Below the pieces are notes generated by a model, which saw only the letters and a program-made list of their open reading frames with translations, had not been told where the DNA came from and did not search any database. Shown here one piece after another: positions 8,588 to 43,200 of a stretch of DNA of 64,000 nt (its first letter is position 1; each line of letters opens with the position of its first letter). The stretch comes from Iphione sp. A-MEVVRFRX5 (taxonomy: Eukaryota). Where the stretch lies: the NCBI GenBank assembly GCA_976226885.1, contig OZ320316.1, positions 77,004,001-77,068,000 of the forward strand, written 5' to 3'. The position numbers were made by a program, and so were the translations under genes.

Positions 8588-8866
8588 CTGAAAACAAGGA
8601 ATTCAGGTTGAAAATGACATACCTTTCTTAAATAGTTTAAGAAAGAGAGACCTTAAATAATGCTCATCCCGTCAAAATTTCTTCCAATAGTGTTACCAGG
8701 CAATATTTTCACGAAAATCAGTAGGTCCTACTACTGGTGGAAGTTGTAGTGTTGGACGTATAATTGGACCTTTTACAAGTGATATCTGACTTGTTTGCAT
8801 CAGAAGGAACTCTAGTAGGTTGACATACCAATCTAGGAGTCGAAGAAACAGTGAAATGACAATTAC

Positions 8867-9091
8867 CGGGAAGTAGAGTCCCGCAGAATCGTGAAGGTGC
8901 TTGAGCTGTCGGACACGGTGGTTCAACTCAGCGAGCAGCTCCATGTAACGTCGATTGAGCAGGTCTAAATCGTTACACACTGTGTCCACACCACTGAGCA
9001 TGCGAGGACGCTTCGTTTTGTGAGCAGCATCAAGGCTGGGATGTGTCTCTTCGAGACTCTTTCGGAATTGTTTGATTTTCTTTTCGTACAG
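8867..9091 (-). CDS. shot/MACF1/DST: Spectraplakin exon (end of plakin domain)
   Basis: LYEKKIKQFRKSLEETHPSLDAAHKTKRPRMLSGVDTVCNDLDLLNRRYMELLAELNHRVRQLKHLHDSAGLYFP; 225 nt. Confidence 0.92.
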
Positions 9092-11709: not shown

Positions 11710-11793
11710 CTTGGCTTCCTTGACGAACTGCCCACCATTCCGATTAAGCGCCTCGATCTGCGGTCGTCGCTCCTTGAGCTCGTTGTACAGCTC
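11710..11793 (-). CDS. shot/MACF1/DST: Spectraplakin exon
   Basis: ELYNELKERRPQIEALNRNGGQFVKEAK; 84 nt. Confidence 0.9.
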
Positions 11794-12122
11794 CTACAAA
11801 CAGGAGCACGTTGCTGTACATAGCAGTACATCCGCTCGCTAAATACTGCCCCCAAACTGATTTCTTATTAGAACTACCGTATACTCAGTTATGTACTCTT
11901 TCAAACATTTTTTTTCTGTTTAGAAACACATGTAACATCGTTTCGTAGTGATCATTGCAGAAGAAAATCTAATTACCTTTTAAGTATGACAACTAGAAAG
12001 TGTATTTTAACGATATTTTTACACAATAAATTCTCACTCCTACTAGTTACAAAAAAAGTGTAGTAAGCTGGTAGGTTTTAACTAATTACCGGAGCAAACC
12101 AGGAGTTTCTGGGTCTACTCAC

Positions 12123-12282
12123 CACGGTAGGCTCGACCATAGCCCGCGCGTCAGCACCATTGGTAGGTTGGGGCGGCAGGTCGCGGACCCGGCGCTGCAT
12201 CGACGACACCCACGGACCCTCCGTGCCCATGCCGTTTTGGTAGAGGGTCAGCAGGTCGAGACCATCGTCGGCGTTGCGTAAT
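12123..12282 (-). CDS. shot/MACF1/DST: Spectraplakin exon
   Basis: LRNADDGLDLLTLYQNGMGTEGPWVSSMQRRVRDLPPQPTNGADARAMVEPTV; bridges phase 2 to 0, so no exon is required inside the N gap. Confidence 0.85.
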
Positions 12283-12490
12283 CTGAAAATGGTAATGGAC
12301 CGGATGAGGAAAACAAAAAAAATGCAGAGTCGGCAAAACTGACGGGGAATATAGACGACCTACGTACATCCCAAGTTCTTGGATCAAATGAAACTTAGTG
12401 TGCATATTACCCTTTCTATAGGATAAATGGTAAAAGGACTAATTTACAATTCGCACATTAACAAGAGTGTGGACCTGTGAGGACTATTGT

Positions 12491-12642
12491 NNNNNNNNNN
12501 NNNNNNNNNNNNNNNNNNNNNNNNNNNNNNNNNNNNNNNNNNNNNNNNNNNNNNNNNNNNNNNNNNNNNNNNNNNNNNNNNNNNNNNNNNNNNNNNNNNN
12601 NNNNNNNNNNNNNNNNNNNNNNNNNNNNNNNNNNNNNNNNNN
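12491..12642. other. Assembly gap (152 N), intronic
   Basis: Run of N; the flanking exons join in frame without it. Confidence 0.99.
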
Positions 12643-13234
12643 ACCACCTTGATTGGCAGCTTCTTTTGGGGGTAGTTGGCTAGACTTGTTTAAGTCCTTC
12701 AGGTTTACAACTCTCGGTTCTGCCTGACCGGGCACAGCCCCCTTGGTTCTGCCTCACTGAGCACCAGACTGCTACAAACCCTTGGTTCTGCATGACTGAG
12801 CACTGAGTGTGTATGTATGTGCATTGTCAGACCTAGGAACCCCTGAACCAGGTATGTATGTTGGTAGGTGTGTTAGGAAAAGAGTAAAATTGGCATAATT
12901 TCACCTTCAAAATATTTGAATTACTACCAAAATTACCCAGTGCCATGGGGCCATATATATCAATATCATATATTAAAATCAGCTTTTTTGAGTGAAGGGT
13001 TTAAGACTTATAAGACCCACAAGAGTGTGACGGATGGTCGGGACACCAGCTGGCAGCATTCCTAATGTCCCCCCCTCTATGAGGCGGGGGACAATTAAAA
13101 GGCAAATTGAATACAATCCATGGGATTATTTTATCGAATAATTTATCTGGTTTGAATAGTGCCTGTTTTTCTTAAGTCTATACTGCAACTCTTCCTCTGT
13201 CAGGGATCAATGATACTCCTAAAAACGGACGTAC

Positions 13235-13428
13235 CTCTCCGCTGTTTGGATGTTGAGGTTCTCCCAGCGTGAGACCGTGGCGTCCACTTCCCGCTCGAGC
13301 CGCTGGACGTCTGGGTGTGAGCGCGCCATGCCCGGCCGACTGCGGGCCACTAACTGCTTGACGGCCATCATGTCCTGGCCAAGCTGGTTCACAGCAGGGC
13401 CAAGATGCTCCGTCTTCTCCACTAGGTC
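13235..13428 (-). CDS. shot/MACF1/DST: Spectraplakin exon
   Basis: DLVEKTEHLGPAVNQLGQD...HPDVQRLEREVDATVSRWENLNIQTAER; 194 nt. Confidence 0.92.
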
Positions 13429-13728
13429 CTGGGAAAAAACAAAGGGGTGAGAAAAAAAAACAGGTGACAACCTAGCCTGTGGAAGAACTGAAGTAAGTTG
13501 AATACTTTACACAAAAGTTTATGCTTTTGGTCCAAAAATATTTTGTGATGTTTTCTTAGGACGAGTAAGTGAATGTATGATACATGCAATTGAAAACATG
13601 GGTGGGCCAAATTTGAAAAAAAAAAGATCAATACACAAATCTATTCCACAATATCTACTCCGATAACCTTACACACGATATAGGGACCGCAACAATGAAG
13701 GAAATTATATCATGGCTGTTGAAAGTAC

Positions 13729-13867
13729 CTTCAGTTGGTACTGCATTGTTCGCAGAACCTCAACATTAGATGTCATGATGTCCTGAGATATCAGTTGTCT
13801 CTCGTAATCTGCCAGTGTGTGGTTGAGTTCATCGAGACTATTGAGTACAATCTCTACAGATTTTAAT
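13729..13867 (-). CDS. shot/MACF1/DST: Spectraplakin exon
   Basis: LKSVEIVLNSLDELNHTLADYERQLISQDIMTSNVEVLRTMQYQLK; 139 nt. Confidence 0.9.
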
Positions 13868-14273
13868 CTGGAGACGGGAGACGAAATTTCAAATTTTACT
13901 GACATTGCAAAAGTAACGATAAGTGGATCCAATTCAATATCCTTAGCAATGAACATTTCAAGTTTATATGAGTTACATGGTTTTAAATCAAAACAAACTT
14001 AAAAAAATGTATAGGAATACATCCATGACCGCAACATATGCCTACGCCTTATAAAGGCATCGTATCAGCCATTGCACATAATTTTAACATTATCTTGCAC
14101 TACATTTCGCAAGGAAAAGATTTCTGGTCTTCTGTTGTATTATACGTGTATTCTACTTCTGGTGCATATTCCTCCTCGAATCTTAGCCATCCATGGACCC
14201 TGTGGTCATGTATACTAGGCCAAACATATAATTATACAGCTCTGTCTTTGAGACTCTACGACAAAGGACGTAC

Positions 14274-14440
14274 CTCTCTACGTAGACGTGAGACATGGCC
14301 CACAGGTGGTCCCACTTCTCGACGACGGCACTGTAGCGGGCTTCCACCTCCGGTGTCCGCCGTGCGGGACTCATGCCTTGGTACATGTCCTGCATCTGCT
14401 CGATGGTGGGCTCCAAGCCCTGGAGACTATTCTCGAATTC
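14274..14440 (-). CDS. shot/MACF1/DST: Spectraplakin exon
   Basis: EFENSLQGLEPTIEQMQDMYQG...VVEKWDHLWAMSHVYVER; 167 nt. Confidence 0.9.
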
Positions 14441-27533: not shown

Positions 27534-28781
27534 CGTCAAGACCTGGCAACGGTCACCTAGACGTGGTAGTTTTTACAGGGGCCATTTCTCCTGCGAAAAG
27601 TCTATTATTTCAAGCGGTTCATCCCAGCGCGCCAACAGCACCACTCCAATAACAAAACAACGGCCCGGATGTGTCCACCGCTCACTGTCCATTTACATAT
27701 CGCCGAGGTATCCACTCGTGGTTAAATCACTGCTGGATAGAATGTCCTCTCAAGGGGCCGAGGGGTTAGTCGTCTCCTGTTTTGGCTGGGCTGAACATGG
27801 TGACAATGGATATCATCCCCTCGTTAGGCTGGCAACATTCCCGGCTGCATTTACAAGCGGCAGTCTGACTAGGCTCTGATCTTTCTGCACTCCCCATCTG
27901 TGGTAACCACATGTCCGAACGCAATGTGTGCACGTTCGATGCCGTCCATTGTTATTCTATATAATACTGTGTCCGATCCTGGGCATATGTGTGATTACTT
28001 GTACGCCGTCGTCGGTAAGTTCACGTGTGCATCTGAACGTCAGAAGCACATGCCTACGCGTACGTAAAACGCGTGCACGTATGCGCGTTCTCCACTGCGT
28101 ATATCACCGCCGTGCGTGTGCCTGCATCAGCACGTGTTGTCTCCGAGGGTGAGACAGCAAACGAGACAAGGGCCCTATCGAGCGAATGGATAAGCAGCTT
28201 TCATCAGGTGGGCGCTGCACTGTCTAACGGACGAACACCCACACAGTCCTGTTCCGGGTGTGTTCGGAAAAGTAACCAAGCAATCATTCAGCACAAACTA
28301 AATTTAGAAGTGAAGGCACATTTCCAATAGAAACCTGAAGTGGCCTCTCAACTGATGCAAAAGTTCAACCTACGGCTTTTCCTGATAACGGGGATGAATG
28401 ATATGAAAGGTATGCGGCACGAAGCTGCCAGCTTATCAGCAGCGTTCTCAAGTGGCCAAGATAACTTTACATATATATGTATGTGCAAAACTGCCACCAT
28501 CGATCGGGTAACTTTGTCTTTGTCTGACAATATCGAATAGGCCGCTGTACGTTATACCGAACAAACAACGAGGTCTTTCAGTTATTATTTTAAGAACAGG
28601 AAGCTGATCTCACGTGCAAACAGTATTCTCAGTTTTGTCTCATATCATATTCACATCCAACAGCAGCACATTAGAAACACCCTGCTTTCCATCAAAAATG
28701 CAGTATTTTATGAATATATACCAAAAAACGACTCGAAGAATGTCCTGGTTTTATACGGACACATATGGATGTTTACTATAT

Positions 28782-29367
28782 TGTAGGCTAAAGCCTAGGT
28801 TTAGTTACACTGCTAGTAGCAGGGGTCATTGAGTGCAGAACTTGGGGTCAATGAGTGCAACTTCTGATGCCACTGTCATGTACCATCTGAGGTCAATGAG
28901 TGCATTCTGGTGACCTCATGGAAATTTCCACTACTGTGTTAATGTGATGTGATTGGTTGATGGACTAGTGGAAATTTCCACTACTAAGGTGTGATTCTCT
29001 GATTGGCTGGTGGGAGATCACCCCACCTGCCCATATTAGGTAATAGAGTTATGATTGGTCACTGAGAGATCACCCCATATTTCCTAATATGGGGGGAGCT
29101 CTCTGATTGGTGGAAAACATTCTATAACTTGTTACTTTGTATCTTTTATAAGGAAAAGTGTACTGATTGGCTAGAAACATTCTTTCTGACATGATACATT
29201 GTTACAATTAATGGAACTACATTCTGATTGGTTAATCGGTGAGGCTAGGCCTCTGATTGGTGGAATGACACTCAGAAGGGATATATAAACGGTGGTTTTG
29301 GAAGGAAATAAACAGTTTGGAACCAGCAATTGTGGTGTTCACAGCAACTTTATTGGTCCACTTTACA
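28782..29367 (+). repeat. 5' LTR (586 bp)
   Basis: No difference from 39708-40293 by eye; TATATAAA at 29282, AATAAA at 29307, seven GATTGG (inverted CCAAT) boxes. Confidence 0.97.
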
Positions 29368-29368
29368 C

Positions 29369-29386
29369 TGGTGGCAGCGGTGGGAT
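29369..29386 (+). promoter_or_regulatory. Primer-binding site complementary to the tRNA-Leu 3' end
   Basis: TGGTGGCAGCGGTGGGAT is the reverse complement of ATCCCACCGCTGCCA+CCA, the 3' end of animal tRNA-Leu (AAG type) as I recall it; starts 1 nt after the LTR. Confidence 0.9.
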
Positions 29387-29392
29387 AGGATA

Positions 29393-30253
29393 ATGGCCCG
29401 CAAGATAGTGGACGTTGACGAGGAAGTACAGCTGAGAATGCCACGGGGAGTGGAGGAAGAAGAAGAGGCACCGGAGCCATTTGTGTTAGCTCCTGAAGAG
29501 CCCCTGAAGCTGAACAGTCTCAAGCCTGAGCGTTTTGACGGTCGCACTGATGATTGGGAGAGTTGGCTGTTGCAGTTCGAGGAGTGGGCAGGTGCCTGCA
29601 ATTGGTCGGAAGGGCAGAAGTCGGCGGCACTCACGCTACTACTCTCAGGAAGTGCTCGCGCATTTTACGGCGACTTGTCCAGGGAAGAGCGAGAGACGTA
29701 TGGGGCCAAAGTGAACGCTCTACAGGCCAGATTCGGCCGAGGCCGGAACCGCATCATGGCGATGCAGGACCTTTCCAGTGCCAAGCGCCACAAGGGAGAG
29801 GACGTACGGGCCTACGCCGACAAAGTTAAAAGGTTGGTGAGGAACGCGTATGAAGATGCGGGACGCGAAACCAGGGAGCTGGCTACCGTCTCAACGTTCC
29901 AACGGGGCCTGACAGAAGATCTGCATCTCAAGTGCCTCGAGGCCAAGTGCGAGACACTAGAACAGGCGATACAGGTTGTAGAAGTGCAAGAGAAGTTTCA
30001 GACAAGACGGGTACATGCAGTACAAGCAACCAAGGATCCCCAGCTGACGTGGAAGCAGGAGATGCAAGACCTGCTGTCGAAACAGATGGAGCAACTCCGG
30101 ACGGAATTGAAGAATGACGGGGAAGCTAGAAGAAATCGCCGCAAGCTCCTCACCTGCTTCGAGTGCAAAGAGATAGGACATATCCGCAGGGAGTGCCCAC
30201 TCCTCACCAAGGCGAAGCAGTCGGAAAACGACCAGCGGTCACTCCCACAGTAA
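29393..30253 (+). CDS. gag: Gag (286 aa) with a single CCHC zinc knuckle
   Basis: KPERFDG...WESWLLQFE retrotransposon-gag N-terminus; CFECKEIGHIRREC. The ATG at 29393 follows the primer site; the ORF-track start at 29330 lies inside the LTR. Confidence 0.95.
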   Translation: MARKIVDVDEEVQLRMPRGVEEEEEAPEPFVLAPEEPLKLNSLKPERFDGRTDDWESWLLQFEEWAGACNWSEGQKSAALTLLLSGSARAFYGDLSREERETYGAKVNALQARFGRGRNRIMAMQDLSSAKRHKGEDVRAYADKVKRLVRNAYEDAGRETRELATVSTFQRGLTEDLHLKCLEAKCETLEQAIQVVEVQEKFQTRRVHAVQATKDPQLTWKQEMQDLLSKQMEQLRTELKNDGEARRNRRKLLTCFECKEIGHIRRECPLLTKAKQSENDQRSLPQ

Positions 30254-33200
30254 GGCAGGGGGAGATGACCGCGTTGCCGGAATCGGGGACACTGGTAGAG
30301 GCAGGCCAGGGATTGTATCTGAAGGTAAGCGCATTTGAACAGAGCTTCCTTTTGCTGGTAGATACAGGGGCCGAAGTTTCTATCATTAACCCCCGGTTTG
30401 TCCCTGACCTGCCTCATACCATGTTACCATCCCGGATAGTGGGAGCAGGGGGTCATACTATTCCTACTTTTGGGAAGAGAATGGTCCGAGTTCGGATAGG
30501 AGCTAAGGATTTTGATCACGAATTTGTGTTAGCAGAGATTGATGGTGATGGGATCTTAGGCAATGATTTCCTAGGGGAACATAAAGCAATCCTAGATGTA
30601 GCAGAGAGGAAAGTTATGATGTATAATCAGACCTTCGGTTGTAACAGGGTCATCCGTCAGGGAGACAGGTGTTTGAAGGTTGTGTCTGATGTAGAAATTC
30701 CCGCGGGAAAGGGGTGCCTCATCCCAATTGTTAACCCAGGCGGTACCACGCTGCTGGTGGAAGGAGTCCATGAAGATCAAGTGGAAAAGGGGATTGTGAG
30801 CGTTCGATGTGTGGTTGACACAAGTCTCCCGGTGTGGAATCCAGGGTCAGACACCGTGCTGGTCAAGGGAGGGACACCAATAGCCCTGGGGACTGCAGTG
30901 CCGTCAGAGGGCCTCCCAACTGAGACACAAGCAAGAGTCAACCGTGTGAGGGCACTCTCCCCAGTCGAACAGGAGTTAGTCGAAGGACTGACGGAGGGAG
31001 CGAAGTCGCAGCTGAGCGAGGGGGAACAAGCTAAACTTAAGGCACTGTTGAAGAACTTCATACATGTGTTTGCTAGAGATAAGTTCGACCTGGGGCGGAC
31101 GGGAGTCACGCAACATCGAATCTATACGGACACTGACCATCCGATCAAACAAGCCCCCCGTCGGTTACCCCTAGCAAAGAGGCAGGAAGAGCGAAAGTTA
31201 GTGCAGGAGATGCAAGAACTCGGGGTCATCCGGGAAAGCAGGAGCCCCTGGTCAAGTCCCATCGTTATGGTAAAGAAGAAGGATGGCTCAACGCGCTTCT
31301 GTGTTGACTACCGTAAACTCAACCAGAGAACCAAGATTGATGCCTACCCTTTGCCCCGCATCGACGACTCACTTGGGACGTTGGCTGGAGCCAAGTTCTT
31401 CTGCTCCCTGGACCTCGCCTCCGGGTACTGGCAGGTGAAGATGCACCCTGAAGATGCAGAGAAGACCGCCTTCTCGACGTCATTGGGCCTGTACGAGTTC
31501 ACGGTCATGCCCTTCGGCCTAGTGAACGCCCCCGCAACCTTTGAGAGATTGATGGACACCATCCTGCGGGGCCTCACGTGGGACCAGTGCCTGGTATATT
31601 TGGACGATATCCTCGTTTTCGGTCAAGATTTTGAGCAAACACTAGGCAGACTTGAGGCTGTCCTGTCCAGATTCGAATCGGCCGGGTTGAAGTTAAAGCC
31701 CTCGAAGTGCAAGTTGTTCCTAACAGAAATCGACTTCTTAGGGCATCGCATTTCACAAGATGGCATCGCCACAGACCCGGGGAAGATCAAGAGCATCGCC
31801 GACTGGCCGACGCCAACCTGTACGACGGGGATACGCGCTTTCTTGGGCATTTGCTCCTACTACCGAAGGTACGTCCCAGATTTCGCCACCATTGCGAGTC
31901 CACTTAATCAACTCACCGGGAACAGGTCGACTTTCCGCTGGACCGAAGAGCAACAGGAGGCTTTCAAACGGTTGAAGAAGGCACTGATGTCCAGCCCCAT
32001 TCTCGGTTTCCCCATGCCAGAAGGAGAGTACACCCTGGATACAGACGCCAGTGACGTAGGACTAGGAGCGGTTCTGTCTCAACAACAAGAGGACCGAGAG
32101 GTGGTGATCGGGTATTTCAGCCGCAGCCTGAGCCCGGCTGAACGCAAGTACTGCGTCATGCGACGAGAGCTGTTAGCGGTGGTGACCAGTCTCAAACACT
32201 TCCACTTCTACCTATATGGACGAGCAGTGACAATTAGGACAGACAACGGTGCAGTCAGCTGGGTAAATCGCATTCGGGACCCAGAGGGGCAACTTGCACG
32301 CTGGATCGAACGCATCCAACAGTACCAGACGAAGTTTGTACATCGAGCCGGAAGATCTAACGGGAATGCAGATGCCCTGTCCCGACAGGAATGCAAGCAA
32401 TGCCACCAGGAACACCTTCTGGAGGAGGACCAGTCCAGCCGGGTCGCGGTCATCACCCGAAGCCAGACTCAAGACACCGATCACCGGGAGCTGCGACTAC
32501 AACAACTAGCGGACCCTGACATTGGCCCAATTCTCAAACTTCGAGAGGCCCAGACAACTCAACCGCCTTGGGAAGAAGTATCTCCTTCCTCTGCGGCAGC
32601 AAAAAGCCTGTGGCGACAATGGAATAGGCTCGAAGTGATTGATGGGATACTCCACCGACGCTGGATCGGAATTGGGGCCGATTACTCCCGAGTTCAAGTC
32701 GTGCTGCCGACCTCGAAGCGGACAGAAGTCATCCGGGCCGTCCACGGCGGGAAAGCGGGAAGCCACTTGGGATGTGATCGGACGACTTTCCTGGTGGGAC
32801 TAGCGTACTATTGGCCGGATATGAAGGGAGACGTCCGGGAAGTCTGTCAGTCATGCCACTGTGCCCTGCTAAACAAGACAGCCCTTGCCCCTCAGGCAGG
32901 GCTAACCTCTTACATAGTAGGAGAACCTATGGAGAGATGGTCTATGGACGTAGCTGGCCCATTCCCCATTACCCAACGGGGGAATAAGTACGTCTTGATG
33001 ATCGGTGACCACTTCTCCAAATGGTTAGAGGCTTTCCCGATGCCGGATCAGAAAGCCGAACGGGTGGCAAGGCTGATTCTGGAAGAAGTAATCGTTAGAT
33101 ATGGCTGTTTCCGCGAACTGCATAGTGACCAGGGGACGAATTTCTGCAGCGAAGTAATTCACTCCCTCTGCGAGCTGATGGAGATCAAGAAAACACGCAC

Positions 33201-33867
33201 CACGCCGATGCACCCTCAGGGAGACGGTTTCGTAGAAAGAAGTTTCCGCACTCTTGGACGCATGCTGAAGGCCTACCTCTACGAACACGAGGCCGAATGG
33301 GACGAGGCACTCCCGTATTTGATGATGGCCTACCGAGCGTCCCCACAAGCCAGCACAGGATTCTCTCCAAACTTCTTGATGTTTGGCCGGGAGATCACGT
33401 TGCCACTACACGTGATGGATGGGGTCCCCAGCCGAGACCCGGACTCGGATCACCCGCTGGAGGTGGCAGTGAACAGAACTCATCATCGAATGCAGCAGGC
33501 CTTCAAGAAAGCCAGGGAGAACCTAAAGTGCGCGGCAAAGACACAGGCGCATCAATACGACAAGAGAGTACGACAAGAAGAAATACATCCAGGGTCGGTA
33601 GTATGGCTCCACCATGCACAACCGCCACGGGGGAAGGCTCCAAAGCTCCACTTTCCTTGGCGAGGTCCCTGCCTTGTGACGCAAGTGCTGGACTCGGGAC
33701 GAGCAGTTGTGCAGCAGTCGTGCTCATCTCCAGGGAAGGTAGTCCACAGGAATCGCCTACTGCCATTTAAAGACAAACGACTGCCCCCATGGATTACGCG
33801 CTGGAAGAAGATCAACGAGAAGAGCACGCCGCGACGGGATGAGGTACCCCCAACCCAAGAGGTATAA
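30163..33867 (+). CDS. pol: Pol polyprotein (protease, reverse transcriptase, RNase H, integrase), in the -1 frame relative to gag
   Basis: LLVDTGA protease; LDLASGYWQ, MPFGLVNAP and YLDD in RT; TDASDVGLG in RNase H; integrase D-D-E (MDVAGP, HSDQG, VER) and a GPY/F-like WRGPC motif; uninterrupted frame. Confidence 0.98.
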   Translation: MQRDRTYPQGVPTPHQGEAVGKRPAVTPTVRQGEMTALPESGTLVEAGQGLYLKVSAFEQSFLLLVDTGAEVSIINPRFVPDLPHTMLPSRIVGAGGHTIPTFGKRMVRVRIGAKDFDHEFVLAEIDGDGILGNDFLGEHKAILDVAERKVMMYNQTFGCNRVIRQGDRCLKVVSDVEIPAGKGCLIPIVNPGGTTLLVEGVHEDQVEKGIVSVRCVVDTSLPVWNPGSDTVLVKGGTPIALGTAVPSEGLPTETQARVNRVRALSPVEQELVEGLTEGAKSQLSEGEQAKLKALLKNFIHVFARDKFDLGRTGVTQHRIYTDTDHPIKQAPRRLPLAKRQEERKLVQEMQELGVIRESRSPWSSPIVMVKKKDGSTRFCVDYRKLNQRTKIDAYPLPRIDDSLGTLAGAKFFCSLDLASGYWQVKMHPEDAEKTAFSTSLGLYEFTVMPFGLVNAPATFERLMDTILRGLTWDQCLVYLDDILVFGQDFEQTLGRLEAVLSRFESAGLKLKPSKCKLFLTEIDFLGHRISQDGIATDPGKIKSIADWPTPTCTTGIRAFLGICSYYRRYVPDFATIASPLNQLTGNRSTFRWTEEQQEAFKRLKKALMSSPILGFPMPEGEYTLDTDASDVGLGAVLSQQQEDREVVIGYFSRSLSPAERKYCVMRRELLAVVTSLKHFHFYLYGRAVTIRTDNGAVSWVNRIRDPEGQLARWIERIQQYQTKFVHRAGRSNGNADALSRQECKQCHQEHLLEEDQSSRVAVITRSQTQDTDHRELRLQQLADPDIGPILKLREAQTTQPPWEEVSPSSAAAKSLWRQWNRLEVIDGILHRRWIGIGADYSRVQVVLPTSKRTEVIRAVHGGKAGSHLGCDRTTFLVGLAYYWPDMKGDVREVCQSCHCALLNKTALAPQAGLTSYIVGEPMERWSMDVAGPFPITQRGNKYVLMIGDHFSKWLEAFPMPDQKAERVARLILEEVIVRYGCFRELHSDQGTNFCSEVIHSLCELMEIKKTRTTPMHPQGDGFVERSFRTLGRMLKAYLYEHEAEWDEALPYLMMAYRASPQASTGFSPNFLMFGREITLPLHVMDGVPSRDPDSDHPLEVAVNRTHHRMQQAFKKARENLKCAAKTQAHQYDKRVRQEEIHPGSVVWLHHAQPPRGKAPKLHFPWRGPCLVTQVLDSGRAVVQQSCSSPGKVVHRNRLLPFKDKRLPPWITRWKKINEKSTPRRDEVPPTQEV
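30223..30278 (+). promoter_or_regulatory. Predicted -1 ribosomal frameshift signal (G_GAA_AAC plus hairpin or pseudoknot)
   Basis: Heptamer is in the gag frame at 30223-30229; 5-nt spacer; stem GCGGTCACTCCC (30235-30246) pairs with GGGAG-a-TGACCGC (30260-30272); loop GGCA can pair with TGCC (30275-30278). Confidence 0.75.
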
Positions 33868-34140
33868 CTTTCCGGTTTTGGTGATGGATTGGGGACAGGT
33901 TCCCGCTGGAGTATCTTAGCATCCCGAAAAGTCGTACAGCAGGGTAAGGGACAGGTGCCCTGGAGCGTCTCAGCGTCTCGAAAGTCCCACTAGTTATTCC
34001 TTAGTTCCTCTATTGGCCTTTGCAGTTGGCGAGGTCCCCACATTTCCGTTTGGCCAGGGCAAGAGAGATCCCCCTGGAGCGTCTAGCGTCTCGAAAACCC
34101 TCTGGTTAGACTTTAGTTCCTTGTGTTCTAAGAGTTCTTT

Positions 34141-34794
34141 GTCAGGGAAGGAAGATGGTTCCCCTGGAGCGTCTCAGCGTCTCAAAAGTCTTCGGTCAGG
34201 GAAGGAAGATGGTTCCCCTGGAGCGTCTCAGCGTCTCAAAAGTCTTCGGGTCAGGGAAGGAAGATGGTTCCCCTGGAGCGTCTCAGCGTCTCAAAAGTCT
34301 TCGGTCAGGGAAGGAAGATGGTTCCCCTGGAGCGTCTCAGCGTCTCAAAAGTCTTCGGGTCAGGGAAGGAAGATGGTTCCCCTGGAGCGTCTCAGCGTCT
34401 CAAAAGTCTTCGGGTCAGGGAAGGAAGATGGTTCCCCTGGAGCGTCTCAGCGTCTCAAAAGTCTTCGGTCAGGGAAGGAAGATGGTTCCCCTGGAGCGTC
34501 TCAGCGTCTCAAAAGTCTTCGGGTCAGGGAAGGAAGATGGTTCCCCTGGAGCGTCTCAGCGTCTCAAAAGTCTTCGGTCAGGGAAGGAAGATGGTTCCCC
34601 TGGAGCGTCTCAGCGTCTCAAAAGTCTTCGGGTCAGGGAAGGAAGATGGTTCCCCTGGAGCGTCTCAGCGTCTCAAAAGTCTTCGGGTCAGGGAAGGAAG
34701 ATGGTTCCCCTGGAGCGTCTCAGCGTCTCAAAAGTCTTCGGTCAGGGAAGGAAGATGGTTCCCCTGGAGCGTTTCAGCGTCTCAAAAGTCTTCG
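34141..34794 (+). repeat. Tandem array of 12 x 54/55-bp units inside the retrotransposon
   Basis: Unit gtcagggaaggaagatggttcccctggagcgtctcagcgtctcaaaagtcttcg(g); unit lengths 54,55,54,55,55,54,55,54,55,55,54,54; flanked by a duplicated ~150-bp block and diverged units (about 33890-35050). Confidence 0.97.
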
Positions 34795-35381
34795 AAGTTA
34801 TTCCTTGGTTCCTCTATTGGCCTCTGCAGTTGGCGAGGTCCCCACATTTCCGTTTGGCCAGGGCAAGAGAGATCCCCCCTGGAGCGTCTAGCGTCTCGAA
34901 AACTCTCTGGTTAGATTTTAGTTTCTTGCGTTCTAAGAGTTCTTTGTCAGGGAAGGAAGATGGTTCCCCTGGAGCGTCTCAGCGTCTCAAAAGTCTTCGG
35001 TCAGGGTAAGGGACAGGTGCCCTAGAGCGTCTCAGCGTCTCAAAGTCCCACTAATTATTGGTTCCCCCAGACCTACCCCGAATCTTTCCATTAGCGATAT
35101 GGAAGGGAGCCCCATTCTAGGTCCGACACCAAAAAGGGGGGGGGGCTCCACCGCATGATATCTCAGGGGCCCAGTAGCATGAGTAGAATCAGTCGGGGTG
35201 GGGACCGTCTGCCGCGCTACCAACCAACGGACGGGTCGCCAACCTCGACTATCTACGCCTCGACGGAGAGAGACATCGGCACTGGGCTGCCGGTGAGCGA
35301 CCAAGTCAAGTCTGCAGATCCGGGCACTATGACCGCCAGCGGCTGCGGCTGGGCAGGACCACGATCCCAGGCGACACGACC

Positions 35382-35532
35382 GTCGTCCGCTGCATAGGAG
35401 GAAGATGTCCCAGATGATACGACCATCATCTGCTGCACCTACCTTGTCGGGTTGCCGACTGCTGTCGTCCGCTGCATAGGAGGAAGATGTCCCAGATGAT
35501 ACGACCATCATCTGCTGCACCTACCTTGTCGG
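35382..35532 (+). repeat. 69-bp direct repeat, two copies (35382-35450, 35464-35532)
   Basis: Identical copies with period 82. Confidence 0.9.
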
Positions 35533-35931
35533 AGAAAGTGGAGACAACACTACCACGCGTTAATCCCCAGAGTGGTGACTGTTACTTACCTGTGATGAAT
35601 TTGGATTGAGGACGATGATCCTAGCGAGAAGACGGGGGGACCACGGTCCCTATCGCCCCTGCGGACTGTTCCAGGCATCCGGGTGATTGCAGAGACACTT
35701 ACCATCCTCAAACGGCACGACCACCACACTTCTCAAGCCCAAGACAACAACAGATACAGGTATGTGACAGTGGCATCAATATGGGTAAAGGACGGGGTTG
35801 CTACTATTTGGCACTCGGCAGTTAGTGTGAGTCTCTAGATGGGGAGACCCCTATGTGAAGAGTTACCGACATGTGAACGTGAAAATAGAAAAAGCCAGTA
35901 AGACACAAGTGCAGGACAAGTGGATTTTTTT

Positions 35932-35937
35932 TTTATT
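35932..35937 (-). terminator. Poly(A) signal of the antisense gene
   Basis: AATAAA on the minus strand about 20 nt after the TAA stop (35957-35959), followed by a U/GU-rich tract (cttgtcctgcacttgtgtcttactggctttttctattttc). Confidence 0.7.
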
Positions 35938-35956
35938 TAGATGAAGAGTATGACGC

Positions 35957-36635
35957 TTATTCCTCGTCGGATGATATGCAAATAGGCCAGAAGCCGGTGT
36001 CGCCGGGGACTAGCCCCGTGCACCACCGCTCCATGGCGGGAATGTCCAATCCGGGTGGCAGAATGGGGGAGCGGCTGGGGGTGTCCTGGGCGGATGTGGA
36101 TGAAACACTGGGCGAGGCCGGAGTAGAGGGGATGCTCTCTTCGTCTGTTGAGCGCTCGGATGTGCCGGGGGAAGCGACGGAGGCGGTGAGAGTGCCGGGA
36201 ACGAGGGGGTCCTCCCCCTGGCTCCCCCCGACCCCGCTGTCATCGGAGGTGAGACCGGGGTCAAGTATACTGGTGGCCATGCTTCCGTACTCCCACTCGT
36301 CGTCGTTGCTGGGATGATCCTCGGCCTCCCCGGCGGCGGCCAAGAGGGCGTCCACGACACGGGGGGATGGTGGCGCATCATCCCGCGGCCAGATCACAGT
36401 GGCCGGGGCAGCGTCCCGCGGCCATACGACGGTGGCCGGCTGTTGCGGGTCGCTAGCAAGCAGCCCCGCAATGATATCGTCGCTCCGGCGCACGGTCAGG
36501 TCGATGGTATAGTTGGGACCGTAGAGCGCCAGATGCCCCGGGACATCTAGGTAGAAAGGGGCCTCCGGGGCTGCCCGCACCCCTGCAACCCGCACCCGCG
36601 GGCCGGGGGTGTAAATATCCACGTATGGGACGCCC
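35957..36635 (-). CDS. Antisense accessory gene, last coding exon (acidic, Pro/Ser-rich)
   Basis: Acceptor ctcatttcccttcctag|G GGC GTC CCA TAC GTG is in frame with the 221-aa ORF, which ends ...WPICISSDEE*. Confidence 0.75.
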
Positions 36636-36760
36636 CTAGGAAGGGAAATGAGACGAGGATGTCAGGGGGGAACAGCCATAATTAGGACAGGTGGGTTAGC
36701 ACAATGATAGAGACAAAGATGCAAACGGGATAAAGAAGCTGTAGAGAGGGGAATACTTAC

Positions 36761-36823
36761 GGGAATCCCTCATCGGGGACCGGGATGAGTCCACCTGGCT
36801 GGGGTACCCAGGGATCTCCATAC
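36761..36823 (-). CDS. Antisense accessory gene, internal exon (63 nt)
   Basis: Acceptor cctatctcccttcctag, donor gtaagt; YGDPWVPQPGGLIPVPDEGF; phases match both neighbours. Confidence 0.72.
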
Positions 36824-36947
36824 CTAGGAAGGGAGATAGGGATGGCATTTAGCTGCTGGTGATGAGGGAGGTGTTCAAATGAGGACTCAGAAATTCATGG
36901 AACTAGTCAGGAAATCACTAGGAAATGGACATAGATGGGACGCTTAC

Positions 36948-37007
36948 CGGGGGTCAGTGGGCGCGTAACCACCAAAAATAGGATCGGCATAAGCAGGCAG
37001 GGGGAAC
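36948..37007 (-). CDS. Antisense accessory gene, internal exon (60 nt)
   Basis: Acceptor cttattttccttctcag, donor gtaagc; FPLPAYADPIFGGYAPTDP; no stop; phases match. Confidence 0.7.
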
Positions 37008-37137
37008 CTGAGAAGGAAAATAAGCACTGACCTATAGTGAGATAAGTTACCTGGTAATGAAGACAAGGGAAATTACAGGGAGGCCTTTTTTTTATCAGAC
37101 ATTGACTATGGAGAATGGTAACCCCTCCCCACACACG

Positions 37138-37148
<11 letters not shown>

Positions 37149-37199
<51 letters not shown>
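37149..37199 (+). repeat. A51 homopolymer inside the retrotransposon
   Basis: Read directly; preceded by (CA)n. The length may be a sequencing artefact. Confidence 0.9.
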
Positions 37200-37201
<2 letters not shown>

Positions 37202-37336
37202 TGGGGTGAGTGGATATGTATCTCAGAAACCCATTTAGCAACCCTACCAGACCCTCTAGCCTGGATGTACATTTGTCATTGAGATGAGCTGACCACACAC
37301 ATATTTAGAAAATTTGTCAAAATTGGCCCTACTTAC

Positions 37337-37435
37337 ATGTCAATGGATGGGCGAAACTTTCAAAATTCGGGTGACAGGCTCTCCAAACTTTGGGGAGGCA
37401 GGCCGGGCCGGCGGCGGGGGAGCGATGGAGATCGA
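37337..37435 (-). other. Antisense accessory gene, upstream exon (mostly 5' UTR; ends in AT, completing ATG on splicing)
   Basis: Acceptor ccactccag, donor gtaagt; exon end ...GACAT joined to the next exon's G TTC CCC gives ATG. A further gtgagt donor lies at 37490. Confidence 0.5.
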
Positions 37436-38009
37436 CTGGAGTGGCGGCGAGCCGGATAACAAGGAGCGAGCGACGACAACAGCTACTCACAGCGACTTTC
37501 GGGCTCAGAATGATGAAAAATTCGCGGTGACGACATCAAACTTCGTGATATGACGTTGCTGGCACGAGGTTGAGATGGAGACAGCCCGAAAAGATCGAAA
37601 GGAACAGTTTGAATGGGTTTTCGTTCCACGATGACGCACGGTGGAACGGAGCCCGAAATGAGCCCGAAATTTTACGACACTCCATATTTGGGAACGTCGT
37701 TTGCGACATCTGTACCCACCTGCAGCAGCGTTTTCGGGGAAGAACGAGCCGGCGGGAACAGCACCCAAAGAGCGAGGAAAAGGTTGTTCGACCCGAAATT
37801 TGGTGGGGAGCGACCCGAAGTTGGAAGGTCGAGGCCACGGGAGCAACGGGTCGGTGAGGACGGACGATTACGAGAAACATTTGGTGGGGAGCGACCCGAA
37901 GTTGGAAGGCCGAGACCACGGGAGCAGCGAGTCGGCGAGGACGGACGACTACGAGAAAGATTTCAACCGGCCCGAAACTGGTGAGAAACGACCCGAAGTT
38001 GGAGTGAAC
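37340..38009. promoter_or_regulatory. CpG-rich, putatively bidirectional internal promoter region
   Basis: Lies between the divergent antisense gene and ORF3; 11 CCCGAA/TTCGGG hexamers in about 630 bp; 81-bp tandem duplication (about 37800-37960). Confidence 0.45.
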
Positions 38010-39494
38010 ATGTCTCGTCGGCTACTGGACCCGGATGAACCCATCCCAGAAGGCAAGATATTGTGCCCACCGTGTTTAGTGAGGGGACTTAGACGGGTGT
38101 GTTCTGGGAAGAAGGGTCTCAGGCGTCATCTGTTGGAGCAACACAGGGGGAAACGCAGAAAACCTATGGCATGCCTGTTCTGCCGGTCCTCCCACTGTGA
38201 CAACCATTCGTGGCTGACCCACACTCGTCGACACCATCAGTGGGCAGTCGAGTTGCACCTCACGGATGAACCATACCGTTCACTGTTTCATCTAGTGTAC
38301 AGGGAGAGAGTAGAGGCAGATGCTCCAGACGATCAGGTAGCGCGGGCAATCATAGCGGCACGAGAATATTGGAAGAGAAGACAGAAGGTTACCAAGGAGA
38401 TGATGATCCGCCTACTGAGAGAAGCTGAAGAGTCCCTGAGAGATGACCAGGCGAGGGCACCACCGCCTGGGAGAGAGCCCGAGACATTGCCGGCACCTAC
38501 CGGTCCAGTTGCCAGGTCTCAGTCTACTGGCTCACCGACATCCCCTGTACCAGCTGTGGGTCCCACTGGGGCTCGTAAGTTCAAGTCAACCAAGGCAAGG
38601 GGACCAGCGGCTGTGAAAAGCGAGACTGCGACAACAGCCCCCGGGCAGCCAACACCGTCTACATCAACTGCAGGCTCCTCTGCCACCCAGGGATTTAGGC
38701 CCCTCGAACCGAAGGGATCGCCAGCCACGAAGCACGGGGCCGTGGCAACGCCTGCTCCACTGACCCAGACCCCCATAAAGGTTGATAGTGCCAGGACGAC
38801 CTCCCCCGGTCGCAAGAGGACCAGGGTGGCCTTACAGACCGCCACGGGCGAACGGGCTCTTCCCGACAACACGACAGCACGACAACAGGTCCCAGCCGAG
38901 GGACAGCCAGCTACGTTTGTCCCCGAGGAAGACTCGATCATCAGCATGCTGAGGGGGGAGATGACCGGCGACGATCCGAGAAGAGAGAGGGCGAGGGCCC
39001 TACTGGACGGAAGAATTCCCCCATATCGGGCGGCGATGCGTGAGCGGCCCACATCCTCCACTATACGCCTTCCCCAGCGAATCATCTGGCCTCCAAGGGA
39101 CTGGGACCAGGCCGATGGGGGCTCACGATTCCTGTGTAGCCTCAGCGTGGCATGGACCCTACACATGGCCGAGGACAGAGTGATGCCAACAGACAGGCTG
39201 GGACCCCTCCGGGACAGACCATTCCTCTTGCTGCCAGGCATGTCTTACCCCACGGATGACCTGTGGGGCGATCCCGCATCACTGGGGACAGAGCACGATG
39301 ACATTATCCAGCAGGTACAAGGGTTGCTTAGGACAGGAGACCGGCCACCAGCGTCGACGGTTACATTGTGGGATGCCCAGGCCGACGAAGCGAGACGACA
39401 CCTCACCAGGGTGAACCCCGCCGTGCTGGACCTTTGCCGAACAGGCCCCCCTCTCTCCCGCCCCCTCACCTTGAGAGATTACTGGGCACTGTAG
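38010..39494 (+). CDS. Accessory ORF3 (494 aa from the first ATG): two C2H2-type zinc fingers, low-complexity linker, C-terminal domain of unknown type
   Basis: CPPC-X17-H-X4-H and canonical CLFC-X12-H-X3-H (38064-38237); basic clusters RGKRRKP and PGRKRTR; no signal peptide or TM segment; frame open back to a TTG at 37701. Confidence 0.85.
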   Translation: MSRRLLDPDEPIPEGKILCPPCLVRGLRRVCSGKKGLRRHLLEQHRGKRRKPMACLFCRSSHCDNHSWLTHTRRHHQWAVELHLTDEPYRSLFHLVYRERVEADAPDDQVARAIIAAREYWKRRQKVTKEMMIRLLREAEESLRDDQARAPPPGREPETLPAPTGPVARSQSTGSPTSPVPAVGPTGARKFKSTKARGPAAVKSETATTAPGQPTPSTSTAGSSATQGFRPLEPKGSPATKHGAVATPAPLTQTPIKVDSARTTSPGRKRTRVALQTATGERALPDNTTARQQVPAEGQPATFVPEEDSIISMLRGEMTGDDPRRERARALLDGRIPPYRAAMRERPTSSTIRLPQRIIWPPRDWDQADGGSRFLCSLSVAWTLHMAEDRVMPTDRLGPLRDRPFLLLPGMSYPTDDLWGDPASLGTEHDDIIQQVQGLLRTGDRPPASTVTLWDAQADEARRHLTRVNPAVLDLCRTGPPLSRPLTLRDYWAL

Positions 39495-39694
39495 ACGCCT
39501 ATTATACAAGTTTAGCTAGTTTTAAGTTAGTTAGGTGGACTGTTTGAATCGTTAACAAGGTTATTGAAAACGGAAGGAGATTATTTGGTACTAGGACTTT
39601 TTCTCTTGGAAAACAATGCTGGAGCTCCGCGAGGGAAAGACACCATAAGGGGGTGAGTACAGATCTTTTTTTTTGTGAGCCCATGCCTGGGATT

Positions 39695-39707
39695 AAGCAG
39701 GGGAGAG
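39695..39707 (+). promoter_or_regulatory. Polypurine tract
   Basis: AAGCAGGGGAGAG immediately before the TG of the 3' LTR. Confidence 0.92.
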
Positions 39708-40293
39708 TGTAGGCTAAAGCCTAGGTTTAGTTACACTGCTAGTAGCAGGGGTCATTGAGTGCAGAACTTGGGGTCAATGAGTGCAACTTCTGATGCCACT
39801 GTCATGTACCATCTGAGGTCAATGAGTGCATTCTGGTGACCTCATGGAAATTTCCACTACTGTGTTAATGTGATGTGATTGGTTGATGGACTAGTGGAAA
39901 TTTCCACTACTAAGGTGTGATTCTCTGATTGGCTGGTGGGAGATCACCCCACCTGCCCATATTAGGTAATAGAGTTATGATTGGTCACTGAGAGATCACC
40001 CCATATTTCCTAATATGGGGGGAGCTCTCTGATTGGTGGAAAACATTCTATAACTTGTTACTTTGTATCTTTTATAAGGAAAAGTGTACTGATTGGCTAG
40101 AAACATTCTTTCTGACATGATACATTGTTACAATTAATGGAACTACATTCTGATTGGTTAATCGGTGAGGCTAGGCCTCTGATTGGTGGAATGACACTCA
40201 GAAGGGATATATAAACGGTGGTTTTGGAAGGAAATAAACAGTTTGGAACCAGCAATTGTGGTGTTCACAGCAACTTTATTGGTCCACTTTACA
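39708..40293 (+). repeat. 3' LTR (586 bp)
   Basis: No difference from the 5' LTR by eye; followed by ATAT. Confidence 0.97.
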
Positions 40294-43200
40294 ATATACA
40301 TTATTACTCTCGCCAGTCGTGCTGCGGTTAGTGCACAACATACATCACATCGGAGGCACAAACTCCGCCAGCAGCTGGGAGTGGTCGATAGGGATCTGCT
40401 GTTGAGTGGTCTAACCTTGTCGTTCTCCCACCAAAAGCGAATATAAAGGCTCCTCAACTGCAAACAAAGTCCGGTCGTATGAGATATATACAGCGAGCTG
40501 GGATGGGCGATCTGGTGCCGCGGTCGCCAAGCCCTACTTTTTTACGGGCGTGTGCGGCGAGTGATGTGAACGTGGTGCGGCTGATGCCGGCCGGCCGGCT
40601 ATCGTGGACCTATCGTGTCTTGGCACTAGCCACGCAAGGGCCGGGGCGGCTCAGCAACCGGCAACAACACCTGTTATAGCCGGTCACCGTTGGATCACCA
40701 AGCCCCAACCCACCCCAACACCTCCCACCATCCCAATCGTCGCGCGTCGTCATAGCGGTATAACTTTCCCATCGTGGAAACAAAAGATGGACCATGCTGA
40801 CATTCCTTTACCGCGTTGATACGGTCAGAATCCTTTTCCCTGGGTGTGATACTTATATAATCAGAGCGCATATGGCTATCACGTAAACATGACATCTGTG
40901 GAGAAATTACCCGTAATGCTGTAAGAATCATGTAATTATATCGCAACGATTTAGCGGGCCCCAGTTCGTGAAATTGAAACTTTACCGTCCAGCTCACGCA
41001 AAATGGAAATATGAAATTGGCAATTTTCCCAGGGAAAAAAAGACGATGTTGCCTGGCACAAACGCAATAAAACATACAATGTAATGCACTGTTCGGACAA
41101 ATTACATATATAACTCATTTCAACACGTAAATACATATACATTCATTGTAGATTTCAAAACGCCTTCAGCTTTCGTATTTTGAGAGGCGTTAACGTTCGA
41201 TTTTATATCAACGTGCTATATATTCAGGAGAGCCCGAACCTGATTGGTCTGTAATAATCACCAAAGAGCTTTCTACAAGAACTCAAGTTCCAGTTTTCCT
41301 CGCCTGATGAGATCAAAGGACTGGCCGACATGCGGTAGATATTGACCTCGTGTTGCCCCCCATTCATGAAGTCGGCAATCCGGGTACTTGTGGCGAGCAA
41401 GGTGTAAACAAAGAGTTGTCAAAGCAATTTTCATACAGATTTCAATGGTATCATATGAATCCATTGTGAAAAATGTTTAGGTTTATCCTTAATCTAATGG
41501 ACCACATTAGTGTTTAGATAAAAATCCTCTGTTAAAATTTCTAATTTAGCAAAAACCCTACAGAGGTGAAAAGTGGGTGATAATCAGGGAGTTTCTGCAT
41601 ATTCTAATGTGAAATCTAAGGCCTGGTGAAAACACACTGATAATAATTTTGACATATGAACTCTATCTACAGGTAGTTCTAGGTGTGTTTTCATTATAAT
41701 ATCAGAGTTGGCATTGAAATCATTGCCAAATGATTATTATAGACATAAACATTATAATGACTCAAAGAGAGAAGCCCACTACCTTTCACCTCCACCCCAG
41801 GCAAACTGACCTACATTTGACTAAGGGTACCAGGCTTATCAGCCACTGTGACGTCATTCCCACTTCAAGAATTGTCAAGCTAACGCATCCATACTGTTAT
41901 CTCTATGTGTATGCCCCATCGGTCGTCAGAGATTGTCGGTGTGACATTTCAACAAAGTTTCTTTCCATATTACTGAGCATTTAATTGGTCTCTGTCATCT
42001 TTGAATGTTTATTTCCGTGAAAGAACGTTAGGAACAACGCCAATATATGTCGGTGGCATCCTGTAGTGTTCCCTTTTTTGCGTGTCCACCTATGTTGGAC
42101 AATATTTGTAAGTCTTTTATAACTCTTTTTTCCTTCCAAAGAAGCCAATGAAAGACATTCATCTGGACGCGATCCTCGATAGGAATAACAGTTGAAAGTC
42201 AGACGTGATACGAATTAATATATCTTCATGACACGGTAGAGCGAACAACGAATGTATTGTACCTAAGCAGGATTCTGCTTTACAAAAAGCTTCCTAACTA
42301 TACAACTTTGATAAAGGAAAAACGTATTCAAATAACGTAGTGTGGCCGTAGATACTGACCTATTTATATACATTATAAATGGGATGGCCTAAAATTTCTA
42401 CTTGTTTTTCCTCGTGGCTGACACGAAATAATGGCGACCGTATGCCACATATCTAGGAATGACAGCCCTGAAAATAACCTTCCAAGTTATATAGATATTG
42501 CCATAATGTAAATCCTACTCACATTCTGAATTCGTGACCAGTGGCTGACTTTGACAAGCAAACACACAGCCATTTACGCGTTCAGTATTTTAGGGATGAT
42601 TTCATTTATATATATATACGTGTTACAGCTTTTTATTCTATAGGTTTAGCTGAGCATCTGACAATTAAGAAACGCAAGGTGGAATAAATTGGTGTATAAC
42701 AATGCAATTATTTTTGCGTGGGCCGATACTTTTACATTTGAAATCTAGGCCACCTACGGTAACATGGTGGTTCAGCTGTGAGTCAGTTTTGAAAAGTGTT
42801 TTCCCTCTAGTCTGCTTTTCATTTTCAAACATTGGACGCTGGTGTTATCTAAAAGCAGGACTGGTAAACACGGCGTGAGAGCATGTTTGTCCAGACTTCT
42901 CCTTAAAAAATCCTGGTGACATATTTAACAACTCGGCGTCTCTCTGTTGAGAAGCGGCCCGTGTTAAGTACTACATTAAATTAACATCAAGAATTATACG
43001 GGTCATGTTTACTTCGAAAAGACAACGGTATCGATATCTTTCCTTTTTTTGTCTTGAAAACAATATCATAGCACTCTGAGGATGTACAGTCAACAATTTT
43101 TGTCACGACTTGGCATTAACTGAGGACCATGGCCGTCTATTTACAGAGATCGATACAAATGTAGATAAGGTACACAAAGATATCAGTTTGCAACGAGACT

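Follow-up and report, generated by a model that had tools for sequence, protein, structure and literature searches.

Can a long terminal repeat (LTR) retrotransposon carry on its antisense strand a complete protein-coding gene with introns, and can the start codon of such a gene come into being by splicing only? These questions are raised by a stretch of 64,000 nucleotides (nt) from Iphione sp. A-MEVVRFRX5 (GenBank assembly GCA_976226885.1, contig OZ320316.1, positions 77,004,001 to 77,068,000 of the forward strand), here called the window, in which an LTR retrotransposon of 11,512 bp with intact gag, pol and a third sense open reading frame (ORF3) occupies positions 28782-40293. An initial annotation had proposed that the minus strand of this element harbours a gene of several exons, which specifies a protein of 267 amino acids (aa) and the initiation codon of which is assembled across an exon junction. 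The analysis of the sequence presented here suggests that the element probably carries a self-contained antisense protein-coding gene between pol and ORF3, be it an accessory or regulatory gene or a recently transduced one. That the gene as such is real appears fairly likely, and a start codon made by splicing is plausible but unproven.

On the minus strand, three predicted GT-AG introns with consensus donors, pyrimidine tracts, branch-point candidates and a maintained reading frame follow each other, as is characteristic of a gene processed by the spliceosome (Table 1). The donors read CAT|GTAAGT (37336), CCG|GTAAGC (36947) and CCC|GTAAGT (36760), the acceptors ending at 37008, 36824 and 36636 consist of a long pyrimidine tract followed by CAG or TAG, and branch-point-like CTGAC and CTTAT motifs are located approximately 17-26 nt upstream of the acceptors with no AG intervening. 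Every coordinate of the initial annotation has been reproduced, these three introns with canonical GT-AG dinucleotides. Equally, the joining of AT (37338-37337) to 37007-36948, 36823-36761 and 36635-35957 yields 804 nt in frame, which correspond to the proposed 267 aa plus the stop codon. The proposed alternative form of 329 aa, which begins at ATG 37536, removes a further intron of 55 nt (37490-37436) and uses an acceptor of intron 1 located 43 nt upstream (last intron base 37051), is likewise an open frame. The polyadenylation signal with its U-rich tract was also found where it had been reported, past the stop codon, and is the sole AATAAA on the minus strand within 35000-36000. On the other hand, the 55-nt segment did not live up to its designation as an intron; with a GC content of 0.62 and six CpG dinucleotides it is exon-like and lacks the intron signature, so that its intron status is doubtful and it is to be considered part of exon 1.

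The base composition delineates the same structure. Exons 2-4 have a GC content of 0.60-0.67 versus 0.365-0.464 in the three introns, with an observed-to-expected ratio (o/e) of CpG in the introns of 0.09-0.39, and only 7.7% of the 124-nt segments of the element interior show a GC content of 0.465 or less. Such low-GC segments mark intron 3 exactly (36636-36760) and also fall on introns 1 and 2 and on the 3' end of the gene. Within intron 1, 51 consecutive T (A on the plus strand, 37149-37199) lie beside a (TG)n stretch, (CA)n on the plus strand, and the sense genomic RNA would consequently carry an internal A51 tract. An origin of exon 2 plus intron 2 and exon 3 plus intron 3 by tandem duplication was considered, found only marginal support (z about 2) and is not claimed.

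Whether such a chain of introns is more than chance was addressed by a strict scan. To be counted, a chain had to show donors of the form GTRAGY and acceptors in which YAG is preceded by 15 positions with 11 pyrimidines or more, to keep its frame, and to close with an exon of 150 codons or more. On both strands of the window, equivalent to 128 kb, chains of two or three introns occurred at the antisense locus only. In a control of 1000 trials, in which the element interior was shuffled in blocks of 300 nt with preservation of dinucleotides, a three-intron chain arose in 0.2% and a two-intron chain in 4.6% of the shuffles. Furthermore, the GTAAGT hexamer is clustered, with four of the nine minus-strand occurrences in the window located within 35584-37336.

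The coding potential was assessed by a chi2 test of nucleotide by codon position. Exon 4 shows a codon periodicity of chi2=43.3 (p=1e-7), which is as strong as the signal of gag (46.8) and of windows of pol (27-50) and above that of ORF3, and the 354 nt, equivalent to 118 codons, ahead of the first methionine in this exon reach p=8e-6 alone. Periodicity is absent from the joined introns (p=0.55), from the downstream 0.9 kb (p=0.57) and from the spacer between exon 1 and ORF3 (p=0.53). A coding signature is thus present in the last exon but not in the introns. The predicted frame obtains the top codon-usage score of the six frames and shows the distribution classically seen in coding sequence, with G abundant at first and scarce at second codon positions. 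It fits best with three of four reference coding patterns, namely gag, pol and an exon of the host plakin gene introduced below, whereas against ORF3 as the fourth reference two other frames fit better. The longest open reading frame on the plus strand across the gene region amounts to 113 aa. Taken together, the scan, the shuffles, the composition and the periodicity lend good statistical support to the original proposal of an intron-containing antisense gene inside the LTR retrotransposon.

Where translation of this putative gene would begin can be narrowed down by the distribution of stop codons and ATGs. The first methionine of exon 4 is its codon 119, and in-frame ATGs are missing from exons 2 and 3 as well as from the 118 codons of exon 4 that precede it. 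If the unspliced sequence is read backwards from each exon, an in-frame stop is reached before any ATG, namely 10 codons ahead of exon 4 (TGA), 25 codons ahead of exon 3 (TGA) and 23 codons ahead of exon 2, and the frame of exon 1 is shut by a TGA 8 codons before the junction. Therefore, upon removal of the three supported introns, the junction AT|G would be the sole AUG able to open the frame. This AUG has a purine at position -3. The minus strand is devoid of ATG between 37535 and 37337, and in a transcript beginning within this stretch the junction AUG would be the first AUG. An initiation at ATG 37536, if the 55-nt segment is retained, leads to an upstream open reading frame of 17 codons only. 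Given a real gene, the chances that the junction AUG serves as the start can be put at about even or somewhat better. The description of translation as strictly splice-dependent in the initial annotation is an inference from the stops and missing ATGs, with the 329-aa form and non-AUG initiation as competing options. If the splice-made start is true, the protein could be made from processed antisense mRNA alone, and neither unspliced antisense RNA nor read-through transcripts would yield it.

A sequence of events can be proposed for the expression of the gene. Transcription would start in or near the CpG-rich, motif-dense spacer at 37.5-38.0 kb and run leftwards. The CpG o/e of exon 1 and of this 0.47-kb spacer is 1.2-1.3 versus about 0.74 in host DNA; 10 of the 23 CCCGAAR motifs of the window fall within 37497-37998, mostly inside the spacer, and the spacer also contains an 81-bp duplication (37798-37959). 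It is thus a candidate for an internal, possibly bidirectional promoter for the antisense gene and ORF3. Predicted exon 1 lies beside the spacer, approximately 2.2 kb inward of the 3' LTR, and further exons may be located upstream of it, where minus-strand donors exist at 39126 and 38535. Splicing would then remove the three introns of 329, 124 and 125 nt, and removal of the first would join the terminal AT to G and thereby create the only in-frame AUG of the mature message. Translation would give rise to a very acidic, proline-rich, lysine-free and mostly disordered protein, and the transcript would end at the AATAAA 19 nt past the stop codon. Downstream of this signal, perfect GTAAGT donors at 35702, preceded by an ATG, and at 35589 as well as acceptors with pyrimidine tracts (35389-35705, minus strand) may indicate that the antisense transcript has alternative 3' exons. 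A second spliced antisense frame of 157 aa, the ATG of which abuts the 35702 donor, shows neither periodicity (p=0.37) nor a GC contrast between exons and introns and is probably not coding.

The predicted protein of 267 aa is unusual in composition. It contains 41 proline, 26 aspartate, 13 glutamate and no lysine residues, which results in a net charge of -27; approximately 3.2-3.5 lysines are expected, and the probability of finding none is about 0.03-0.04. A short WPRD repeat is present. The exception to the predicted disorder is a small C-terminal hairpin with two cysteines in the AlphaFold2 model. The C-terminal PGDTGFWP motif, encoded within 35960-36100, matches N-terminal regions of light-harvesting proteins in the PDB with E=0.017-0.5, which is most likely due to chance.

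The surroundings of the gene region are those of a complete retroelement. The LTRs with their target-site duplication, the order of gag and pol, the primer-binding site and the polypurine tract identify it as a Ty3/gypsy (Metaviridae) LTR retrotransposon, and the succession of protease, reverse transcriptase, RNase H and integrase in pol is the Ty3/gypsy order. The 5' LTR carries repeated CTGATTGG boxes, a TATA-like box and an AATAAA, and the primer-binding site (TGGTGGCAGCGG..., starting with TGG) follows 29367. As the LTRs are identical, the insertion is very young. On the sense strand, neither AATAAA nor ATTAAA is present across the whole 10.3-kb interior (29368-39707), where about 4-5 would be expected by a rough chance estimate; this absence conforms to expectation because the genomic RNA must not be cut early. 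Between the tandem array that follows pol and the antisense region, approximately 0.9 kb extend without a long sense open reading frame, and an exact direct repeat of 69 bp with a spacing of 82 bp is situated at 35382-35532 of the minus strand, past the end of the antisense gene. A search of 33800-38100 against Rfam was negative. The N-terminus of ORF3 displays two C2H2-like pairs of the type CxxC...HxxxH, followed by a long middle part rich in proline, serine, threonine and alanine; reading the translation by eye, with no prediction run, a transmembrane segment was not noticed, and ORF3 is not env-like. No similarity exists between ORF3 and the antisense protein.

Table 1. Features of the retrotransposon and of its predicted antisense gene (positions in the window)
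Feature	Position	Strand	Characteristics
Target-site duplication ATAT, 4 bp	28778..28781 (left); 40294-40297 (right)		read directly
5' LTR, 586 bp, TG...CA	28782..29367	+	100% identical (586/586) to 39708-40293
gag with CCHC zinc knuckle	29393..30253	+	Pfam zf-CCHC E=2.5e-5; codon periodicity chi2=46.8
pol, 1234 codons, intact frame	30163..33867	+	Pfam RVP, RVT_1, RT_RNaseH, Integrase_H2C2, rve
Tandem array, 54/55-bp unit, directly after pol	33898..35059		core 34141-34794 with 12 copies, 99% identity; flanks degenerate
AATAAA polyadenylation signal	35932..35937	-	19 nt past stop; GU/U-rich stretch next
Exon 4 (predicted), last 225 codons and stop (35959-35957)	35957..36635	-	GC 0.667, CpG o/e 0.9
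Intron 3 (predicted), 125 nt	36636..36760	-	GTAAGT ... CTGAC branch-point candidate ... tttcccttcctAG; GC 0.464, CpG o/e 0.39
Exon 3 (predicted), 63 nt	36761..36823	-	open in frame; GC 0.635
Intron 2 (predicted), 124 nt	36824..36947	-	GTAAGC ... ctcccttcctAG; GC 0.46, CpG o/e 0.19
Exon 2 (predicted), 60 nt; first G completes junction ATG	36948..37007	-	GC 0.60
Intron 1 (predicted), 329 nt	37008..37336	-	GTAAGT ... ttttccttctcAG; GC 0.365, CpG o/e 0.09
Exon 1 (predicted, 5' limit tentative), 5' untranslated	37337..37536	-	ends ...GAC AT|; CpG o/e 1.22
CpG-rich spacer between antisense exon 1 and ORF3 ATG	37537..38009	.	CpG o/e 1.34
Sense ORF3, 494 aa from first ATG	38010..39494	+	translation
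3' LTR	39708..40293	+	polypurine tract AAGCAGGGGAGAG precedes 39708

In the host DNA of the window, a metazoan gene of the plakin family is found on the minus strand at 2-8602 and 8696-22269. Its giant exon (2-8602) extends over 2867 codons or more and encodes 14 or more plectin repeats, the SH3_10 exon at 16080-16373 closely resembles its counterpart in human plectin, and the exons between the two are spectrin-like. The retrotransposon is antisense to this gene and is situated upstream of the listed exons or within an intron. The minus-strand exons and the polyadenylation signal of the element share the direction of the plakin gene and could thus lead to trapping of host transcripts. A run of 152 N is present at 12491-12642 of the window, and the host sequence at 23586-23831 is repetitive, with (TC)n microsatellites after a tandem repeat of 41 bp.

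The relationship of the element to other retrotransposons bears on the origin of the antisense gene. The best pol relatives are 45-46% identical and stem from four loci (L001-L004), all of one ENA assembly (sample ERZ25767047), and the best-scoring named relatives derive from arthropods, sea anemones and a bivalve. Pol relatives in metagenome loci are 31-36% identical, and nothing was found through pol in the viral and prokaryote-genome collections. In L001, an element of 14.2 kb with identical LTRs of 716 bp (8343-22579) from the family to which L003 and L004 also belong, a sense ORF3 of 921 aa follows directly after pol, and several tandem arrays precede the 3' LTR. The two ORF3 products match weakly in a tblastn comparison (28% over 114 aa, E=7e-6), and apart from this match ORF3 found no homologue in Pfam, the PDB or the databases. 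The 267-aa protein shows no similarity to anything in L001. As ORF3 follows directly after pol in L001, the antisense gene appears to have been acquired in this lineage only, at a site between pol and ORF3. It is flanked by parts of the element on either side, pol with the tandem array on one and ORF3 on the other, and insertion scars such as terminal repeats or a target duplication were not found around the gene region. The simplest reading is that the introns stayed in the gene during the most recent round of reverse transcription, which would be possible because they are antisense to the genomic RNA. In this orientation introns would escape the spliceosome in the genomic RNA and be copied intact in each round of retrotransposition; the remark of the initial annotation that antisense introns can survive retrotransposition accords with an established principle (PMC6775231). 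An origin by antisense transduction of host DNA via read-through and subsequent recombination is plausible.

Several results weigh against an antisense gene of this kind. The remote homology search that the initial annotation had recommended was run with the last exon as query and recovered no homologue, neither in a word-indexed search of 5.8 billion proteins nor with full HMMER against 1.84 billion representatives nor among metagenome loci; the antisense product matches no Pfam family at E<=0.1, and the matches in the PDB are at the level of chance (best E=0.017). Single-sequence AlphaFold2 predicts a mostly disordered protein (mean pLDDT, the predicted local confidence, of 40). Neither sister copies of the element nor transcripts were found in any collection searched, and a 23-nt exact pattern remained without match. 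Exons 2 and 3 are too short for the periodicity test (p=0.10), and the donor of intron 1 has a T at position -1. Equally, a comparable antisense chain was not detected in L001-L004 save in L002, which is the one among 11 other loci in which the strict scan gives false chains; there, the chains are driven by composition, with 'introns' and 'exons' equal in GC, and overlap a decayed sense open reading frame. The intron chain alone is therefore insufficient as proof. An explanation by chance holds that a long open frame and splice-like motifs follow from base composition, the spacer being rich in GC and, on its minus strand, in pyrimidines; GC-rich retroelement DNA does indeed yield long antisense open reading frames, for example at 38519-39241 opposite ORF3, false chains do occur, and the protein is an orphan predicted to be disordered. 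Chance is nevertheless very unlikely to have produced the locus, as it would have to account at once for a periodicity of p=1e-7 where the longest plus-strand frame is short, a three-intron chain rarely seen in shuffles, troughs of GC and CpG that coincide with the intron borders, unlike in L002, the clustering of GTAAGT hexamers and a polyadenylation signal located exactly past the stop codon. Still more improbable is a nested insertion after integration or an assembly chimera, which would place the gene outside the transposing unit. The presence of a single copy alone leaves room for such an event; however, fully identical LTRs allow very little time since insertion, terminal repeats or a target duplication do not surround the region, GC-rich element-like sequence continues on both sides, and components of the element constitute both flanks.

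If the gene is real, it would most likely serve the element in an accessory or regulatory capacity, or be a recently transduced host gene that rides along as a passenger. A passenger in the strict sense would be a host gene, or part of one, that entered the element by antisense transduction and contributes nothing to the life cycle of the element, its recent capture having preserved a coding and spliceable appearance; this is a rather unlikely explanation. The route would be read-through of an ancestral copy positioned antisense in a host gene, followed by recombination. In the L001 family, pol is followed by ORF3 without the gene, which suggests that some 2.6 kb were inserted in this lineage alone; the gene forms a complete unit and resembles host genes in its CpG-rich 5' end, its polyadenylation signal and an intron GC content of 0.37-0.46 near the host value of 0.42; the present copy resides antisense next to or within the plakin gene, the very configuration in which a capture can start; and transduction has been discussed as the origin of plant antisense open reading frames (PMC7264820). 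On the other hand, a conserved host gene is expected to have homologues, no host paralogue occurs in the window or in any database searched, and this freshly transposed copy has an unbroken frame, as it would also have after a recent capture. A real gene with a different start is unlikely, whether in the 329-aa form with ATG 37536, the 55-nt intron and acceptor 37051, with a non-AUG codon such as GTG 36622, or with an internal methionine, residue 161 of 267, which would leave a product of about 107 aa. It is true that the 329-aa frame is open, that both acceptors of intron 1 satisfy the strict filter and that ATG 37536 lies upstream of the junction, but the 55-nt intron is very short and of exon-like composition, the 43-nt extension is intron-like in composition and ends with a perfect acceptor, ATG 37536 without the 55-nt intron opens merely the short upstream frame, and an internal methionine leaves 118 strongly periodic codons unexplained. 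The self-contained antisense gene between pol and ORF3 thus remains the preferred reading. Its most elaborate version, in which the element maintains its own multi-intron accessory gene, with an internal bidirectional promoter shared with the zinc-finger ORF3, a splice-made start and a disordered, acidic, lysine-free product that regulates the element cycle or the host defence, can be put forward as a tentative possibility.

Deltaretroviruses and plant Tat/Retand elements are well-known carriers of antisense accessory genes. The literature searched, which is incomplete, contained no description of an animal LTR retrotransposon, Ty3/gypsy or other, with an antisense gene of several introns. Annotation of transposable elements based on open reading frames detects the last exon only, and similar genes may therefore be overlooked elsewhere. 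In plant Retand/Tat-type elements, pol is separated from the 3' LTR by a long region, with a tandem array next to pol and an antisense gene, which in the case of gene23 of maize Grande is transcribed from its own internal promoter (PMC11963269, PMC7264820). Like Silene Retand, maize Grande with gene23 and rice RIRE2, the Iphione element has an array beside pol, a long stretch from pol to the 3' LTR that holds a predicted antisense gene, and a product without clear function. Unlike in these elements, the host is an animal, neither the TRP28 (PF04195) nor the PMD domain is detected (Pfam, E<=0.1), and a further sense frame, ORF3, is located downstream. Equally, the antisense open reading frames of plant Retand/Tat elements are described as continuous with no mention of introns (PMC7264820, PMC11963269), whereas here three introns and a split start codon are predicted. 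The resemblance would accordingly be one of analogy, not of membership.

With respect to splicing, HBZ of human T-cell leukaemia virus type 1 (HTLV-1) is comparable, a minus-strand gene expressed from a spliced antisense mRNA, the first exon of which contributes the coding start and little else (PMC3185765). As with HBZ and APH-2, an LTR retroelement would here carry a spliced coding gene on its minus strand, which is a prediction. The differences lie in the detail: HBZ starts in the 3' LTR with a whole ATG in exon 1, whereas exon 1 of the Iphione gene is located approximately 2.2 kb inside the element and would provide only AT; spliced HBZ joins the exon in the 3' LTR to the main coding exon, whereas three introns are predicted here; and HBZ is a basic leucine zipper (bZIP) protein, whereas no domain and no homology to HBZ or APH-2 was found here in the Pfam, database and PDB searches. 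An ATG split by a spliceosomal intron, with the start codon present in the spliced mRNA only, has a precedent in the gene for ribosomal protein L19 of Nosema ceranae (PMC2685015). The cases of intron-split ATGs are ordinary cellular genes, whereas the gene considered here would reside inside a retroelement. Antisense transcripts of the Drosophila telomeric retrotransposon TART are reportedly spliced as well. The antisense RNAs of TART, a non-LTR element, are regarded as non-coding (PMC7264820), whereas a coding gene is predicted here in an LTR element.

A parallel to the arrangement has been engineered. In lentiviral beta-globin vectors, the intron-containing cassette is inserted in reverse orientation, and the intron is kept through the RNA stage only if it is antisense (PMC6775231). 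The same arrangement would have arisen in a natural element if the gene is real, and, once confirmed by transcripts, it would represent a natural counterpart of the reverse-oriented intron-containing cassettes of retroviral vectors. In that case, LTR retrotransposons would be able to carry and spread complete host-style genes, introns included, and the Iphione element would offer a tractable case for asking which function such antisense genes fulfil.

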